Virus record (IMG/VR): IMGVR_UViG_3300013104_000001
Span: 62,001 to 126,000 of that record
Direction: 5' to 3' (one strand)
Length of the DNA: 64,000 bases
Shown here piece after piece: positions 6,374 through 15,053 of the stretch (positions are counted from its first letter, which is position 1; each line of letters begins with the position of its first letter). The notes under the pieces were generated by a model that had not been told where the DNA came from, did not search any database, and saw nothing but the letters and a program-made list of their open reading frames with translations. Position numbers and translations under genes: made by a program.

Positions 6374-7525
6374 ATGCGTCAATATTTAGACGGGGTTCGT
6401 TATATCTTTGAAAACGGATCTCAACGCGGTGACCGTACTGGCGTGGGTACGTTATCTGTCTTCTCCATGAAACAGACTTACGACCTGCGCCAAGGCTTCC
6501 CGTTGGTTACCAGTAAAAAGGTTCGTATGGATTACATCCTTCATGAGCTCATTTCATTCCTGTCAGGTAATCCTGATATGCCGGGTATCAGTATCTGGGA
6601 TGACTGGCGTGTGAAGGAAGAGATTTCTCGCGAAATCCCGATGGATAATCCCGAGCGACTTACTGCCTGGTGCGAACTGTCTGATCTCAAACGTCCGATC
6701 GCTGAAGCACAGCTCAATGGCATGGGTTCTGTGAAAGCGGCTCATGCTTTCCTGGATCAACAGGGAGTGCCACGTAATAAGAAAGTTGTCCTGGTACCAG
6801 AAGGTGCACTCAATGCACCATACGGGCCAGCCTGGCGCGCGTGGAAGGGTCGTAATGGCGAAGTGCATGATCAGATCGGTTATCTGCTAAACATGCTTAA
6901 AACGAATCCTACGAGCCGTCGTATGGTGTTGTCTGCATGGGATCCCGGTAACATGCCAGATGAATCCATCAGCCCGCAGGATAATGTCATTGCTGGTAAG
7001 CCATGCCTGACTCCATGTCACTGGGCGTTCGAGCTGTACACCGATGAGATCCCGGTTGAAGATCGTATCAATTGGATCGAGGCTAACGCACCTAGCGTCT
7101 GGGATGACTACAACGAATGGTCCCATCGGGGTCACTGGCTAGGTGATACGGATAATAAACGTCTGAATGAGTTTATGGATGATGCTAACGTACCTAAGTA
7201 TTACCTGGATCTGAAATACCATCAGCGTTCATGCGACTACATGGTTGGCGTACCGTATAACATCGCAAGCTATGCCGCACTGCAGCACATGTTTGCCAAC
7301 TCGGTGAACATGATCCCACGTATGTTAGAAGCGGACATGACTAACGTGCATATTTACAATTTCCATAAGGAGAATGCAATTATGCAAGCGAGTCGTACCC
7401 CGCGTGAGTTACCACAACTCACTCTTCTTACTCACTGTGAAAAGCTGGAGGATTACAAGCTGGAAGACTTTAAGTTGGAAGGCTATGACCCACATCCATT
7501 TATTAAATATGAGAGAGCTGTGTAA
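6374..7525 (+). CDS. thyA: thymidylate synthase (with insertions)
   Basis: DRTGVGT, FPLVTSKK, SRRMVLSAW, catalytic PCH, QRSCD, PYNIASY, HIY. Confidence 0.95.
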   Translation: MRQYLDGVRYIFENGSQRGDRTGVGTLSVFSMKQTYDLRQGFPLVTSKKVRMDYILHELISFLSGNPDMPGISIWDDWRVKEEISREIPMDNPERLTAWCELSDLKRPIAEAQLNGMGSVKAAHAFLDQQGVPRNKKVVLVPEGALNAPYGPAWRAWKGRNGEVHDQIGYLLNMLKTNPTSRRMVLSAWDPGNMPDESISPQDNVIAGKPCLTPCHWAFELYTDEIPVEDRINWIEANAPSVWDDYNEWSHRGHWLGDTDNKRLNEFMDDANVPKYYLDLKYHQRSCDYMVGVPYNIASYAALQHMFANSVNMIPRMLEADMTNVHIYNFHKENAIMQASRTPRELPQLTLLTHCEKLEDYKLEDFKLEGYDPHPFIKYERAV

Positions 7526-7582
7526 TCCTACCTCGTAGTAGGAAGGGGTAGGAACCCTGGACTAAATTGATGGAGCAATAAC

Positions 7583-7975
7583 ATGACCTGCAATGAAGAC
7601 TGTACTTTAGTGTTTGGTGAAGTGACGGGTAATCGAGATATCCTTACCTTAAAACAATTCTTTGCTAAGATGCGTGCTGGGCTCTCTAAAACGGATCGTC
7701 GCAGATACCGGATAGACGTAGTTCATTATAAGTTCGTCTCCAGGAATGGTGACATTGTTGTTGATAAAGTCAAGACAGTAGATATCTCAGTCCTGTTTGA
7801 TTTTAACTCACGTGAATCAAGTTGCTCGACTCTGTATACTCATCATGGCTTGGTGGCATCCGATCTTCTCTTACTATTAAAAGAAGAGCAAAAATGGGAT
7901 GGGTATTGTTTAGAGGTTGGGTTGCAAGGTGTGGTGTTAGAGGGGACTGATGAAGGGTTGTTAGAAGTCGCATGA
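7583..7975 (+). CDS. hypothetical protein
   Basis: GGAG RBS. Confidence 0.65.
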   Translation: MTCNEDCTLVFGEVTGNRDILTLKQFFAKMRAGLSKTDRRRYRIDVVHYKFVSRNGDIVVDKVKTVDISVLFDFNSRESSCSTLYTHHGLVASDLLLLLKEEQKWDGYCLEVGLQGVVLEGTDEGLLEVA

Positions 7976-7979
7976 ATTA

Positions 7980-8012
7980 GGGGAGGAGGGGAAACCTTCC
8001 TCCCTTATGCCG
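7980..8012 (+). terminator. 3'-end hairpin + TTATGCCG tag
   Basis: GGGGAGGAGGG-GAAA-CCTTCCTCCC then TTATGCCG. Confidence 0.75.
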
Positions 8013-8033
8013 ATAATAATGAAAGAAGTGAAC

Positions 8034-8067
8034 TGCAGAAAATCTCAGACCTACATGACACACGTGA
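8034..8067 (+). promoter_or_regulatory. putative phage-RNAP (early) promoter
   Basis: TGCAGAAAATCTCAGA-CCTACATGAC-acac-GTGA; one of nine copies. Confidence 0.7.
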
Positions 8068-8106: not shown

Positions 8107-9498
8107 ATGGCAGCATTAAAATCTAAAACAGCTTTGTTCGACTGGTACATGGGCCTGAAAACAAATCTGAAGTCCAATAAAATTACGGTGATTGAGTTTG
8201 AGAAAGAAATCATCGATACCCTCGGTGCTTTCTTTGAAGGCCATAAAGAAATCACTCCGACTAAAGCCGGGCTCATTGCTGACATTCTGAATGCAGTGGG
8301 TTATGACCATATCTTCACACAACCTGCAGCTGTACAGATCGCTTATGTACTGGGCGAAAGTGGCGCTACTACAGAAGAAGTGGTCAGAACAGCGTTGGAC
8401 AACTTCACTGCGGTTCAGGTAGCTGCACAGCTTGACCGTGAAAAGAAACAAGCTGCGAAAGCTGAAGAGAAAAAGACTTTCGCTAAGTTCCCGTCCAGAG
8501 CTGATATCCAGCAATGGGTCAGCATGAACAAACCGACCTCAGTGACCAATAACGTTCGTGATGCATTTAGCGCAATTAGTACCACGAGAGAATATCAAAA
8601 TACCTGTAAATTCTTCGCTGATGCTGAGAAACAAATTTCAGGACTAATAATGGAGCTGAACCAGACTGATCCTAAATATGTCGATAACCTCTTGCTTATC
8701 GACTATTTCGTCTCTTTGATCAGTGCAGTTGACACTATTCCCGATAGCGAGCGCGAACACCTACAGGACACGCTACGAAGTGTGCACGCCAGTCCTGTCA
8801 AAACACCGCACACCGATGCCTTCATGAAGATCGGTGAACCGACTGTTGGTAATGACCGGGTCACCATTGCTAAGCAAGCATTGGAAGAACGTGTGAATAG
8901 CTCCAGATTCAACGGTAATCCTGATGGCCGTGACCGTAGCAGTCTATTACAACGATTCAGTGAAGGTTACTGTCCGGTAACCACAGCGCGGCATCTGGCA
9001 CGTACAGAGCTGATGGACTTCGTGAAAGATACTACGGCGTCTGTACTGCTGGCTATCGCTAACCCTGTTGAAAAGGCGCATGCGGATTTCTTAATAAAGT
9101 TTACCCGCACCGATACTCTGGAACTAGAAAACGGCGTGCTGGCAATCACTACCGATATCCTGCGTAACGGCTTAGTGGAAATGCGCATCTACCATGAACT
9201 GTTCAGCAACATTGGTGCTAACCAAATGGGCTACGCCAAATACCCTCAGCGAGTTACTGGTTACACGCCTATGGGTGCACTGCTGCAACAGTTCATCTCG
9301 CTGTGGCCGATCCCTAATGTGGCGCCACGTTTCAATCGTACTAACGGTGGTTATAACGGCGGGGATGCTTTCGATGGTCCAGTTTCTCTGGAAGAGTCAT
9401 TGTTGTCTGCACTGCATCAGTCTGCGGCTCAGTATGACGTTACACCAACTTTCGGTGTTGACCTGACTGGTAACTGCTTACTGGTTGTGCTGCACTAA
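8107..9498 (+). CDS. hypothetical protein (shares modules with 9557 and 9882 ORFs)
   Basis: AAGGAG RBS; WY..LK..L and LIDYF.S motifs shared with neighbours. Confidence 0.8.
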   Translation: MAALKSKTALFDWYMGLKTNLKSNKITVIEFEKEIIDTLGAFFEGHKEITPTKAGLIADILNAVGYDHIFTQPAAVQIAYVLGESGATTEEVVRTALDNFTAVQVAAQLDREKKQAAKAEEKKTFAKFPSRADIQQWVSMNKPTSVTNNVRDAFSAISTTREYQNTCKFFADAEKQISGLIMELNQTDPKYVDNLLLIDYFVSLISAVDTIPDSEREHLQDTLRSVHASPVKTPHTDAFMKIGEPTVGNDRVTIAKQALEERVNSSRFNGNPDGRDRSSLLQRFSEGYCPVTTARHLARTELMDFVKDTTASVLLAIANPVEKAHADFLIKFTRTDTLELENGVLAITTDILRNGLVEMRIYHELFSNIGANQMGYAKYPQRVTGYTPMGALLQQFISLWPIPNVAPRFNRTNGGYNGGDAFDGPVSLEESLLSALHQSAAQYDVTPTFGVDLTGNCLLVVLH

Positions 9499-9507
9499 TC
9501 TGTATCT

Positions 9508-9537
9508 GGGGAGGATTACCTCCCCTTTTCTTTTTTG
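9508..9537 (+). terminator. intrinsic terminator
   Basis: GGGGAGG-ATTA-CCTCCCC + T tract. Confidence 0.75.
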
Positions 9538-9556: not shown

Positions 9557-9880
9557 ATGCTCGGTACGGTAGAGGAAGTAGATAAGTGGTTTGATCAGAT
9601 GGTGAAGCCTGCTGACGAAGGGGTGTTCTGGATGGGAGGTCGTTTAACCGAAGTTCTGATCCCCATGGTTCGGGAACTGGATGCAATCTTGTTCTCAATG
9701 GACGAGCGTGAACACTTGGCATTGATCGATTACTTCATCAGTCGTTGTTACAACTGTCGGCTGCATACCTCATCGGGTCTGCGTATAAAAGAGATCATCG
9801 AGCCGTTACAAAGCGATCGGGTCTTTCCGGTTTACATCAATCTTTTTGTTAAGAAATATACCCTAACTCAGGAGAAGTAA
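9557..9880 (+). CDS. hypothetical protein
   Basis: AGGTGG RBS, ATG 9557; LIDYFIS motif. Confidence 0.65.
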   Translation: MLGTVEEVDKWFDQMVKPADEGVFWMGGRLTEVLIPMVRELDAILFSMDEREHLALIDYFISRCYNCRLHTSSGLRIKEIIEPLQSDRVFPVYINLFVKKYTLTQEK

Positions 9881-9881
9881 A

Positions 9882-10607
9882 ATGAACAAAGAAACGTACA
9901 CCAATTGGTACGGCAGTTTGAAAAGTCGTTTAGCTGAAGGGCATATCGATCAGAAAGGATTTGAATCCCTCCTTATCGGTAACCTGCTATCGTTAATCAC
10001 CCGTATTTATAATACCCGCTATGACCTGGAGACCATGGCGCGGGAAAATATCCTTGAAATAATCAATCATTACTTTGAACTGATCGCAGATGTCGAGATA
10101 TCGAACCAGACAGCATTAAAATTGATTCGCACTGTAGCCAGTAATATCAAGAAATTACCGGCGGCGAAGACGTTTGCAGAGAAACACAACGTACCCATGC
10201 CTCCACTTGCATTTCTCATAAGCAAACCCTCTCGTACGAATCCTTTTCCTAAGGAAGGTATGATACGTAAGAAAGTTGCCAGTACTACCGATGCAATGGT
10301 AGGTCGTCCAGTAATTACTCAAGTCAACAAAGAAAGTAATGAAGTGACTATTGAGCTGCCGTGGAATGTTGCGCTGCATGTCTACAAAGGTTTCCTGGTG
10401 AAACACCTGATGTCAAAACACGGCTATAGTTTCAATGATGCGTATAAATGTATCGAGGATCATCGGAACAAATATAATTCAATCTTAGAAGAGGAGCTCA
10501 ACAGCATCATTGCGCACAAAGAATCGCATCTGGTATCAGCAGGTGGGGGTATCACTGCTGCGGGCACGGGTCTGGTTGTAGGCGGGATTGTTAAACCGGA
10601 GGAATAA
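9882..10607 (+). CDS. hypothetical protein carrying an RNA polymerase beta'-like segment
   Basis: GRPVIT…ELPWNVALHVYKGFLVKHLMSKHGYS…YNSILEEELNSII resembles the beta' segment between the GRSVI and NRAPTLH motifs. Confidence 0.6.
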   Translation: MNKETYTNWYGSLKSRLAEGHIDQKGFESLLIGNLLSLITRIYNTRYDLETMARENILEIINHYFELIADVEISNQTALKLIRTVASNIKKLPAAKTFAEKHNVPMPPLAFLISKPSRTNPFPKEGMIRKKVASTTDAMVGRPVITQVNKESNEVTIELPWNVALHVYKGFLVKHLMSKHGYSFNDAYKCIEDHRNKYNSILEEELNSIIAHKESHLVSAGGGITAAGTGLVVGGIVKPEE

Positions 10608-11170
10608 TGGATACCGATATCCAGCAATTGTTCAAAGCACGTTATGGGGATTGTGTTAAACGGGGGAATGAAATCACTGTTCCTTTATACCACATTAGTT
10701 TCCATGGTGATCGCGAAGGTATCTGGGTGCCTAAAATACCCGACTCACCTTTTGATACACCGAAGAACCCAAACAGTTCTTTTGGTGAGATGCCAATCCC
10801 ACGGATCTGTGTGGCACCTTCTATTGAACAATGCTTCTGGGCGATCTATCCAAACATCTCTCATTATTTCGAGGAGGAAAATTACGATGCTATGTGCTTT
10901 ACAGTATACCGACCTATACTGAATGCAAGTATTGGTGTCGTGGATACTGCAGCGTTAACGCAACAAGAACTGGTTCATGATGCACATGTCACAGGGGAAC
11001 ATTGGTTACTCGGTGATACCTTCATGGAAGCTATCGATCAAATACGTATCAAGAACACCGCCGCTGGCGAGTTCGTCAGATTTCAACCGTATAACGGTGA
11101 ACGTGCCGAATGGTGGGATCTTGCACCCAAACACGTTGACTATCAATCTCTTAAATTAACTACTGAATAA
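10607..11170 (+). CDS. hypothetical protein, possible ADP-ribosyltransferase fold
   Basis: LYHIS…PRICVAPS…TGEHW strand pattern. Confidence 0.45.
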   Translation: MDTDIQQLFKARYGDCVKRGNEITVPLYHISFHGDREGIWVPKIPDSPFDTPKNPNSSFGEMPIPRICVAPSIEQCFWAIYPNISHYFEEENYDAMCFTVYRPILNASIGVVDTAALTQQELVHDAHVTGEHWLLGDTFMEAIDQIRIKNTAAGEFVRFQPYNGERAEWWDLAPKHVDYQSLKLTTE

Positions 11171-11867: not shown

Positions 11868-12308
11868 ATGACTGATGTGAAAATTGGTTCTGGGCAGAAC
11901 GCTGTCGTTTATGTCCTCAACGACACCATGGTAAAACGTGTAGGTCGCGAGACAGATGGTTTCCGGTTGTTGGCTGATCTCACTGATAGTCAGTGTGCGC
12001 ACTACAAGTTACCTGTAATACACAGCTATGACGACGATACCTACACCGCTATCGTTGAGAAGCTTTACCCAGCAGACCCTGATCGCTTTGAAGGTATTAA
12101 TTGGACATACATTAACGACTGCTTCGATACTCTCGAGGATGTAGACGATGAGGAACTCGCCCTGGTTATCAGGCGCGGTATTGAGCTTCATCACTATTTC
12201 GTGGAACAAGGCGCTGTAGTCGATTTAGATCTTCACCCGAGTAATATCATGCAGCGTTTAACAGGCGAGCTGGTTCTATCAGATCCTTTAGGGTATCTCG
12301 ATATTTAA
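11868..12308 (+). CDS. minimal protein-kinase-like enzyme
   Basis: IGSGQNAVVY Gly loop, VK lysine, DLHPSNIM catalytic loop, LSDP. Confidence 0.75.
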   Translation: MTDVKIGSGQNAVVYVLNDTMVKRVGRETDGFRLLADLTDSQCAHYKLPVIHSYDDDTYTAIVEKLYPADPDRFEGINWTYINDCFDTLEDVDDEELALVIRRGIELHHYFVEQGAVVDLDLHPSNIMQRLTGELVLSDPLGYLDI

Positions 12309-12334: not shown

Positions 12335-13084
12335 ATGGTGGTAACTTTCCCAAAAGAGATGGACGCAGCTTTCCATCCTAATAATGAACACACGACTCAG
12401 CTGTGCAAACAGATTGAACGTATTGCAGGTTTCGAGATCAAACGTCTGCATGTCGTCATCGCCATGCATCACTACAAACTGAACGATGCAGCGCATCAGC
12501 CTGATCATGCACTGATTGTCATGGCGGAAGCCAGTGACATCATCGATCATTATCCAGAGCTTGAGAAGTGGCGTAAACAGATCATGCTGGGTTGTCTGTT
12601 CCATGACACTCACTGTCACGTTGATCGTGACATGCATCATCTGCTGGGTGCTGAACACGCGATAGAGGCACTGTCCCCACATGCCAGTGATTATGGTTTG
12701 TCCCGTGCAGATATCTATCTGATCGGACAGGCAATCCTTGAACATCGGGCATCGTGGAAATACCCTCGTATCAACCCTGTGTCAAACGCTGTGGCTTCTG
12801 CTGATCGCGGATATCCTGACCTACAGAAATACATCCGGCGTGCTGTACAGTACCGCTACAAGCGTATGACAACGATCAACATCAACACAGTGATCGATGA
12901 ATCTATCGAACACATGGTCGAGAAATTCGGTGAAGGCGGTTACGCCTGGGAAAGCTATCCAACCTATGCTGCGAAAATGCACGGCGATTGTATCGCTAAG
13001 GTGAAGGAACAACTGGGTAGTAAGAAGGGCAGGGCCGAGCTGAAGGACTACGCAGAGCTCAACTTTGATGAGTGGGTAGAATGA
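12335..13084 (+). CDS. HD-domain metal-dependent phosphohydrolase
   Basis: HQPDH…LFHDT…HH…EHRAS…ASADR. Confidence 0.8.
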   Translation: MVVTFPKEMDAAFHPNNEHTTQLCKQIERIAGFEIKRLHVVIAMHHYKLNDAAHQPDHALIVMAEASDIIDHYPELEKWRKQIMLGCLFHDTHCHVDRDMHHLLGAEHAIEALSPHASDYGLSRADIYLIGQAILEHRASWKYPRINPVSNAVASADRGYPDLQKYIRRAVQYRYKRMTTININTVIDESIEHMVEKFGEGGYAWESYPTYAAKMHGDCIAKVKEQLGSKKGRAELKDYAELNFDEWVE

Positions 13085-13203
13085 TCTGGGCAACACTTGG
13101 CATGATTGTTTTCGCAGTAGCGCTTTGGTTCGGTATGAAAGCTGTTGAGGCTGAAGATGTTAGACGTGTTGAACGTCTTCGCCGGAAGCGTACCCGGCCC
13201 TAA
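13081..13203 (+). CDS. 40-aa membrane peptide with basic tail (not in ORF track)
   Basis: MIWATLGMIVFAVALWFGMKAVEAEDVRRVERLRRKRTRP; ATGA overlap with the HD gene stop. Confidence 0.7.
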   Translation: MIWATLGMIVFAVALWFGMKAVEAEDVRRVERLRRKRTRP

Positions 13204-14525: not shown

Positions 14526-15053
14526 ATGGAATACGGATTCCTTCTCAATACCCTGCTGCTAATCGCGGCGCTTTTCGTGTTGTTCAGATTCCACAAACTC
14601 GTTAACAACAACGAGCGTGCGGTAATTGCATCGGCGCATGACGCCAAACTGCGTTTCCTCGTGTACATCAGTCGTAAGATGATGGCTGACCTTTATAGTG
14701 CAGTTGATTTGGCGACGCTGACCGCGTGTCCAAAGACATACCTGCGGGCTGATGGGTCAGTTGAAAACATACAAGTCATCATGAAGCGATTCCACAAAGA
14801 GTATAATGAAGTTATTGATAAACTCTCTGTCGGTCTACAACTCGAATACATGAAGATTAGCAGGGTCGTGGTGGTTGAATCACCCGACGGGAAAGAAGTG
14901 ACCATCAGTGTGCATTGGGCTAACAAATATACCGACGTACTGGTGTTCAGTCATAACCACATGGCACAAGCGGTTTACCAGTTGGATCGTCTCGCCCATC
15001 GGCTTTCAACCTTTGGGTACACGGCACCAGCTAAAGACATGTATCAACTCTAA
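14526..15053 (+). CDS. N-terminally anchored membrane protein
   Basis: GAGGTG RBS; N-terminal TM. Confidence 0.7.
   Translation: MEYGFLLNTLLLIAALFVLFRFHKLVNNNERAVIASAHDAKLRFLVYISRKMMADLYSAVDLATLTACPKTYLRADGSVENIQVIMKRFHKEYNEVIDKLSVGLQLEYMKISRVVVVESPDGKEVTISVHWANKYTDVLVFSHNHMAQAVYQLDRLAHRLSTFGYTAPAKDMYQL

Follow-up and report, generated by a model that had tools for sequence, protein, structure and literature searches.

The genome of an Agricanvirus-like jumbo phage encodes, in addition to complete N-terminal β' subunits (β'N) for both of its RNA polymerases, a 241-aa protein (P0001) that is a third, supernumerary, and catalytically dead relative of β'N. P0001 is a chimera comprised of an N-terminal helical module, a segment of β', and a Gly-rich tail. 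It is a real, selected, clade-restricted, non-catalytic three-part protein. In the reading that we favor, to which we assign slightly less than an even chance, it would act by binding, through mimicry of a β'N surface, and would thereby tune the phage polymerase. Nucleus-forming jumbo phages run their whole gene program with two self-encoded split polymerases, and to our knowledge little is known of the regulation of these enzymes beyond the sigma-like fifth subunit; a conserved, dead polymerase-derived protein would be a natural candidate for a regulator or competitor of jumbo-phage polymerases.

Genomic Context and Distribution of P0001

The window analyzed here (the whole 64,000-nt stretch of DNA) spans bases 62001-126000 of a virus record that is 287,406 bp long and carries direct terminal repeats. 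By both DNA and protein similarity, the record is akin to the Erwinia jumbo phages RAY, Deimos-Minion, Ea35-70, and AH06 (genus Agricanvirus), relatives that form a nucleus and encode two split multisubunit RNA polymerases (bioRxiv 10.1101/2023.02.24.529968). Public sequencing runs containing this region are rhizosphere, plant, and phyllosphere metagenomes, with zero RNA runs among them. The features of the locus are listed in Table 1.

Table 1. Features of the P0001 locus, in window coordinates.
Feature	Position	Strand	Description
Upstream 463-aa gene	8107..9498	+	RAY gp069 ortholog, phrog_11106; first ~40 residues like P0001 start
Terminator-like hairpin	9508..9535	+	GGGGAGG-ATTA-CCTCCCC then T run, just past 463-aa gene
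Small ORF, 107 aa from ATG at 9557	9557..9880	+	Between hairpin and P0001; L012 ortholog
P0001 CDS, 241 aa	9882..10607	+	RAY gp070 / AH06_78 ortholog; phrog_11276
N-terminal helical module, aa 1-110	9882..10211	+	Six helices, block-mean pLDDT mostly 79-93
nvRNAP β'N-homologous segment, aa 118-212	10233..10517	+	Profile, hhalign, and structural matches
Gly-rich tail, aa 213-241	10518..10604	+	SHLVS-GGGITAAGTGLVV-G-I-KPEE, near-invariant across orthologs
Downstream 187-aa gene	10607..11170	+	RAY gp071 ortholog; start overlaps P0001 stop (TAATG)

P0001 is the translation of window positions 9882-10604 (+), with no alternative genetic code, and its ATG has a strong Shine-Dalgarno sequence (AGGAG) 8 nt upstream. 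The protein matches phrog_11276, the RAY gp070 family, over residues 1-241 (E 4.5e-106), with synteny in five genomes. We found full-length orthologs (52-74% identity) in 17 records of Agricanvirus and on several metagenomic contigs, and the reading frame is intact in all eleven of the orthologs that were compared (52-74% identity). The family is confined to this Agricanvirus-like clade.

Short fragments of four genes of the same cluster also occur in an assembly labeled as the social amoeba Dictyostelium citrinum (GCA_054859325.1; contig JBTAPL010000082.1, 4.7 Mb; here L013), at positions 7100-8050 and 12920-13110. In phage order, these are pieces of the 463-aa gene, of P0001 (its C-terminal 53 aa, tail included; 74% identity), of a 221-aa gene, and of the HD hydrolase. 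They sit among retroelement genes, and one of them is crossed by a spliced gene model (P0014). Either a chimeric assembly or a patchy transfer of old date could account for them.

Homology and Extent of the β' Segment

A sequence-only reading of this DNA had singled out a β'-like peptide, and this peptide is real: it comprises residues 140-213 of P0001, exactly window positions 10299-10520. Its resemblance to β' is far above chance. P0001 matches phrog_2987, a jumbo-phage polymerase family described as 'RNA polymerase beta subunit' (E 4.6e-20), and a profile built from 11 orthologs and compared with PDB sequences matches both phiKZ gp55 (7OGP_A; E 5.7e-10, query residues 113-208 on chain residues 290-385) and the AR9 non-virion RNA polymerase (nvRNAP) β' (E 8e-5). 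With a custom HMM of 115 nvRNAP β'N representatives, HMM positions 286-382 correspond to P0001 residues 118-221 (E 4e-26), a match that takes in just 97 of the 505 profile positions; hhalign comparison of the segment with β'N gives a probability of 99.6% (E 4e-24). The equivalent residues are 296-385 in phiKZ gp55, 311-397 in the resident nvRNAP β'N (P0002), and about 334-420 in E. coli β', the last of these mapped also via P0002, which aligns to E. coli β' 328-473 at E 4e-8.

The AlphaFold model of P0001 has a mean pLDDT of 67, in which the helices at residues 160-211 are confident and residues 111-158 and 213-241 fall below 50. Foldseek with the whole model returned no match at E <= 0.001, and only local VIA re-alignment was informative. 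Against gp55, VIA-align gave Z scores of 9.9, 9.6, and 9.5 over 58 residues (1.2 Å rmsd), placing the helices on gp55 311-372, and model residues 150-221 aligned to many bacterial β' chains (~357-473) at Z 7.0-7.6. By these sequence and structural alignments, the segment comprises conserved region C (KxGxxRK...GRPVIT), the first β-β-α unit of the double-psi β-barrel (LPW...), and the helical insertion of the barrel. Of the two β-β-α-β units that close such a barrel, P0001 encodes only the first, and possibly one further strand. Region C retains its basic residues only in part: 'GtR' is missing, and the position of the Arg in GRPVIT is R, C, or Q among orthologs. A Pfam search over all members of the P0001 and downstream 187-aa families gave no match.

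The LPW and YNP motifs that the earlier reading gave for phiKZ-type subunits are roughly right, as gp55 has IPW and QYNQ at these places and the family consensus is 'iPW ... kYdpl'. One correction is needed: the likeness to β' holds for the phage-type nvRNAP β'N, but not for host β', to which direct comparison (bacterial and cyanobacterial chains) gives E 0.16-0.5. Since the segment is of phage type, any mimicry would therefore involve the partners of a phage polymerase, and not a host β'-binding factor.

Loss of Catalytic Features and Resident Polymerase Genes

The catalytic parts that the sequence-only reading had reported missing are indeed absent, and P0001 has neither NRxPSL nor NADFDGD. 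The NRxPSL strand-loop is replaced by SHLVS-GGGITAAGTG, and the protein ends 29 residues beyond the homologous segment with no DxDGD, the Mg-holding catalytic loop that P0002 and a second resident protein, P0003, both have. Furthermore, P0001 has no N-terminal Zn-clamp or four-Cys site and no Cys cluster, and its length is 241 aa, vs. ~400-550 aa for β'N.

The claim that P0001 has no stand-alone counterpart is one from absence, and a word search is blind to proteins that differ greatly in length; a profile search of 1.84 billion protein representatives was run for this reason. It returned 231 matches, among which only P0001's own cluster was full length. The other proteins examined among these matches are β'N of 400-550 aa (matched at ~260-380), or contig fragments thereof. 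NRNPSL is present in every other match examined, and most also show the start of NADFDGD where the contig reaches it.

The resident genes provide the complete counterparts. P0002 is a full-length gp55 ortholog of 509 aa that aligns to 7OGP_A from end to end (E 8e-67), and it carries the Cys cluster/Zn motif, QRNPTL, and NADFDGDE, while P0003 is the β'N of the virion RNAP, with GGDYDGD, and its neighbor is 1527 aa. The genome also encodes the nvRNAP β-C (705 aa; record positions 227825-229942) and β'-C (655 aa; 229953-231920) subunits, as well as a homolog of gp68, the sigma-like fifth subunit (514 aa; 222815-224359; E 3.8e-24 to 7OGP_B). The nvRNAP β-N subunit was not located in the genome, which has no bearing on P0001 being supernumerary, and the β'N HMM found no further matching fragment among genome ORFs of at least 40 aa. 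Given intact β'N genes for both polymerases elsewhere in the genome, the P0001 copy is therefore supernumerary; and because the Zn-clamp, NRxP, and NADFDGD are missing while a complete β'N exists for each polymerase, P0001 cannot be a working catalytic subunit. It probably acts through binding rather than through RNA synthesis.

Origin of the Segment

The closest β'N proteins to the segment are metagenomic sequences. The resident P0002 is a poor match (24% identity and 17 bits, vs. 47-54 bits for the best metagenomic β'N), a low rank that is biased by a comparison set picked as the best matches to the query profile. We also analyzed phylogeny by a quick maximum-likelihood search over 97 shared columns. 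The gp070 family is recovered as a single clade (SH-aLRT 100) with a long stem, placed inside an unresolved polytomy and not as the sister of P0002. As P0002 is not the closest relative and the long stem falls in a polytomy, co-evolution with the phage's own polymerase is not evident, and this 97-column tree points to no donor lineage, nor does it show that the resident gene was recently duplicated.

Chimeric Architecture and Selection

By hhalign, the N-terminal module resembles two other N-termini: that of AH06 gene 76, including an NHYF motif (probability 92%, E 5e-7), and that of the upstream 463-aa protein over some 40 residues (87%, E 4e-6). Residues 1-117 have no match to β'N (hhalign probability 0.5%), and a structure search with the module alone returned generic helical bundles only. 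Because the module recurs in other accessory genes of the cluster and has no β'N match, the earlier description of a β' fragment 'grafted into an accessory protein' is a fair one. We also considered residues 1-117 as the clamp-helix region of β'N, since PHROG and AR9 alignments run from residue 50-54; the same hhalign comparison did not confirm this assignment. Copies of the module stand at the start of AH06 gene 76 (L004 6702-7277) and at window positions 8107-8230, and the C-terminal parts of these proteins are unrelated. This arrangement points to a common leader or adaptor domain whose cargo can be exchanged.

The 29-residue tail occupies the place of the GIP...NRNPSL strand-loop of β'N, there is no second copy of its motif in the genome, and its last codons contain the Shine-Dalgarno sequence of the next gene. 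In a codon comparison of five orthologs, pN/pS is 0.03-0.18 for the tail, 0.27-0.38 for the β' segment, and 0.27-0.57 for the N-terminal module, and the tail codons have many synonymous changes and few amino-acid changes. Since pN/pS lies far below 1 in each of these parts, purifying selection acts on the entire gene and is strongest on the tail. We also evaluated a membrane-anchor role for the tail and rejected it, as the best 19-residue hydropathy of the tail is 1.36-1.50, below the usual mark of 1.6. AlphaFold places no helix in this part of P0001.

One ortholog from a metagenomic relative (P0004; L011 5727-5813) has a 29-residue extension beyond the Gly-rich tail, which contains 'IPDFDGAAV'. 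This string recalls the lost catalytic DFDGD loop, but may have arisen by chance.

Neighboring Genes and Transcription Unit

The terminator-like hairpin at 9508-9535 sets the upstream boundary of the P0001 transcription unit. The stop/start overlap between P0001 and the downstream gene (TAATG or TGATG) is kept in four of five genomes (the window, RAY, AH06, and L011); in the metagenomic relative L012, the P0001 and gp071 orthologs are separated by that of the small ORF. A scan for sigma-70 promoters was at or below chance (10 found vs. 14.9 expected). The small ORF was considered as a carrier of the N-terminal module and proved unrelated on comparison. The upstream 463-aa and downstream 187-aa proteins were suspected of being further β' pieces owing to a by-eye likeness ('RICVAPSIEQC' to the strand before NADFDGD), and neither matches the β'N HMM.

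The GC-rich hairpin (GGGAGG-loop-CCTCCC and a T run) is a recurring element, present in the window at 7978-8015 and 9508-9535, and elsewhere in the record at 14681, 33242, 40091, 58432, 65440, 181593, and 221767. At most sites, ATG(C/T)CG follows directly, giving TTTATG; the copy upstream of P0001 is without ATGCCG. The TATG core in these sites recalls the late-promoter motif reported for the phiKZ non-virion polymerase, and the recurring hairpins may be combined terminator-promoter cassettes.

Several other genes of the region are of interest in their own right. An HD phosphohydrolase gene is part of the P0001 cluster. A 146-aa ORF at window 11868-12308 (+), present in only some of the relatives, encodes a Gly-rich loop and DLHPSNI. 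The best PHROG hit of this kinase-like ORF, a weak one (E 1.6e-6), is the protein-kinase family of T7 gp0.7, which PHROG lists as a host-transcription inhibitor. Upstream of the cluster in AH06 lies thymidylate synthase, whose annotation is split in two by an HNH homing endonuclease gene (genes 70-73; L004 2775-4769). In the metagenomic relatives L011 (337-1104) and L012 (1082-1843), a gene with a Pfam Acb3 match precedes that for thymidylate synthase.

The model of the downstream 187-aa protein is confident (pLDDT 85, pTM 0.81), and its structural neighbors belong almost entirely to the ADP-ribosyltransferase (ART) superfamily, including pertussis S1, Scabin, Arr, RES, cholera/LT, MbcT, NatT, ParT, and Tpt1. 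The individual scores are all weak: the best Foldseek E is 0.012 (pertussis S1) and the VIA Z is at most 5.9 (Scabin), with no Foldseek E <= 0.001, no Z >= 8, and no Pfam match. Atlas features give 0.95 for Arr-ms, and the atlas shape TM is 0.49-0.52 to the PT-S1/Scabin and RES clusters. The invariant residues of the family include H29, S31, R66, Y81, S85, Y101, and E131, some of which may form an NAD-binding constellation of the H-Y-E or R-S-E type. On the basis of this model, the protein likely has an ART fold. Its distant homologs (32-41% identity) are found by themselves on small contigs of phages, with no β' fragment alongside.

Possible Function and Alternative Explanations

The data establish the anatomy of P0001, its homology, the loss of its catalytic motifs, its supernumerary status, the purifying selection on it, and the gene coupling; the binding, the mimicry, and the target are what we infer from these observations. 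P0001 would display a β'N surface to one of its usual contacts, namely the sigma-like gp68 homolog, the β-C subunit, or nucleic acid, and the displayed surface would tune how the phage polymerase assembles or how active it is, perhaps jointly with the ART-fold gene downstream, to which P0001 is translationally coupled. The gp68 protein of phiKZ co-purifies with both gp55 and gp71-73, and has to join early for the enzyme to be active (PMC8287921); a gp55-like fragment could therefore compete for such partners. The N-terminal domain of gp68 contacts the clamp helices of gp55 (PMC7618050). These helices are N-terminal to the clearly homologous part and outside the segment, which speaks against mimicry directed at gp68. 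In a more elaborate version, which we regard as very unlikely, P0001 would be a 'poison' or decoy pseudo-subunit that titrates gp68 or β-C, and it may also deliver the ART-fold enzyme. The target could be the phage's own polymerase, in which case the decoy would serve as a timing switch. Alternatively, given that the segment lies closer to the general β'N consensus than to the more divergent resident β'N, the polymerase of co-infecting rival jumbo phages could be the target.

The main rival to tuning by β'N-surface mimicry is a two-gene module in which the β' fragment is an adaptor, substrate mimic, or inhibitor of the downstream ART-fold enzyme, an explanation we consider rather unlikely. Its layout is akin to pairs with the antitoxin upstream and the toxin downstream (Xre-RES and MbcA-MbcT), and the invariant tail could engage the enzyme. 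The stop/start overlap conserved in the window, RAY, AH06, and L011 fits such a module, as do the occurrence of both families on the same contigs across the clade, the confident downstream model with neighbors almost only from the ART superfamily, and the kinase-like gene and HD hydrolase in the same cluster. However, all of the ART fold matches are weak and Pfam gives none, another gene intervenes in L012, and the distant ART-fold homologs lack the adjoining fragment. A reused scaffold with a function unrelated to transcription, whose tail works as a localization signal, membrane anchor, or oligomerization strand, seems to us distinctly improbable: the sub-threshold hydropathy of the tail (1.36-1.50, vs. 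1.6) and its helix-free AlphaFold model count against it, as does the purifying selection on the β' segment itself, which has many family-invariant surface residues. These stand against the strongest constraint being on the tail (pN/pS 0.03-0.18), the partial retention of basic residues in region C, and the long stem of the family, a sign of rapid change after its origin, all of which a scaffold would accommodate.

The remaining two explanations are both contradicted by the data. Further splitting of β and β' genes is known in jumbo phages, and the annotators of AH06 gave the ortholog a β' name, but we give almost no credence to the idea that P0001 is one part of a truly split, functional polymerase subunit and is needed for catalysis: the resident β'N genes hold this region in full, no ORF provides the missing second half of the barrel, and the neighboring ORFs have no β'N HMM match. 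The chance that P0001 is instead a decaying, functionless remnant of a duplicated polymerase gene is similarly negligible, since truncation at both ends relative to β'N and the loss of motifs, which would suit a remnant, are accompanied by a reading frame intact in 11/11 orthologs at 52-74% identity, pN/pS well below 1 in all three parts, and a good Shine-Dalgarno sequence.

Tagging and imaging tools exist for Erwinia phage RAY, and direct tests are feasible there. If P0001 works with the ART-like enzyme, polymerase mimicry would be linked to NAD-dependent modification; if the segment is merely a reused scaffold, it would be a modest example of domain exaptation.

Comparison With Known Systems

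The nearest characterized relative of the segment is phiKZ gp55 (PDB 7OGP/7OGR/8QUE; PHROG 2987), which has the KxGxxRK, R-VIT, (I/L)PW, and Y-N/D motifs in common with P0001. P0001 retains about a fifth of this subunit, without the Zn clamp, NRxPSL, or DFDGD, and, unlike gp55, has an unrelated N-terminal module and a Gly-rich tail added; the true gp55 ortholog in this genome is P0002. The N-terminal part of the AR9 nvRNAP β' (PDB 7S00/7S01) is similar to P0001 both in sequence (E 8e-5) and in structure (Z 9.1, P0001 model residues 150-221), and the same truncations apply; hhalign did not confirm the extension of this match to residue 54. In bacterial RpoC, regions C-D and the helical insertion occupy the same fold position as P0001 model residues 150-221 (Z 7.0-7.6), while direct sequence likeness is not significant (E 0.16-0.5). 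This insertion in regions C-D is usually named the dock.

RAY gp070 and AH06 gene 78 are 61% and 51% identical to P0001 over the full length, lie in the same neighborhood, and have no difference in kind from it. The RAY literature mentions gp070 in a figure legend, as homologous to phiKZ gp055 (bioRxiv 10.1101/2023.02.24.529968), and assigns it no function; gp070 is missing from the mass-spectrometry table and from the tagged proteins of that literature, which holds no localization or proteomic data for it. The AH06 genome annotation names the ortholog 'DNA-directed RNA polymerase subunit beta''. The β' homology had thus already been mentioned in passing, in one figure legend and one genome annotation, and what is new here is the extent of this homology, the loss of the catalytic and clamp features, the chimeric build, the selected tail, the restriction to one clade, and the coupling to an ART-like gene.
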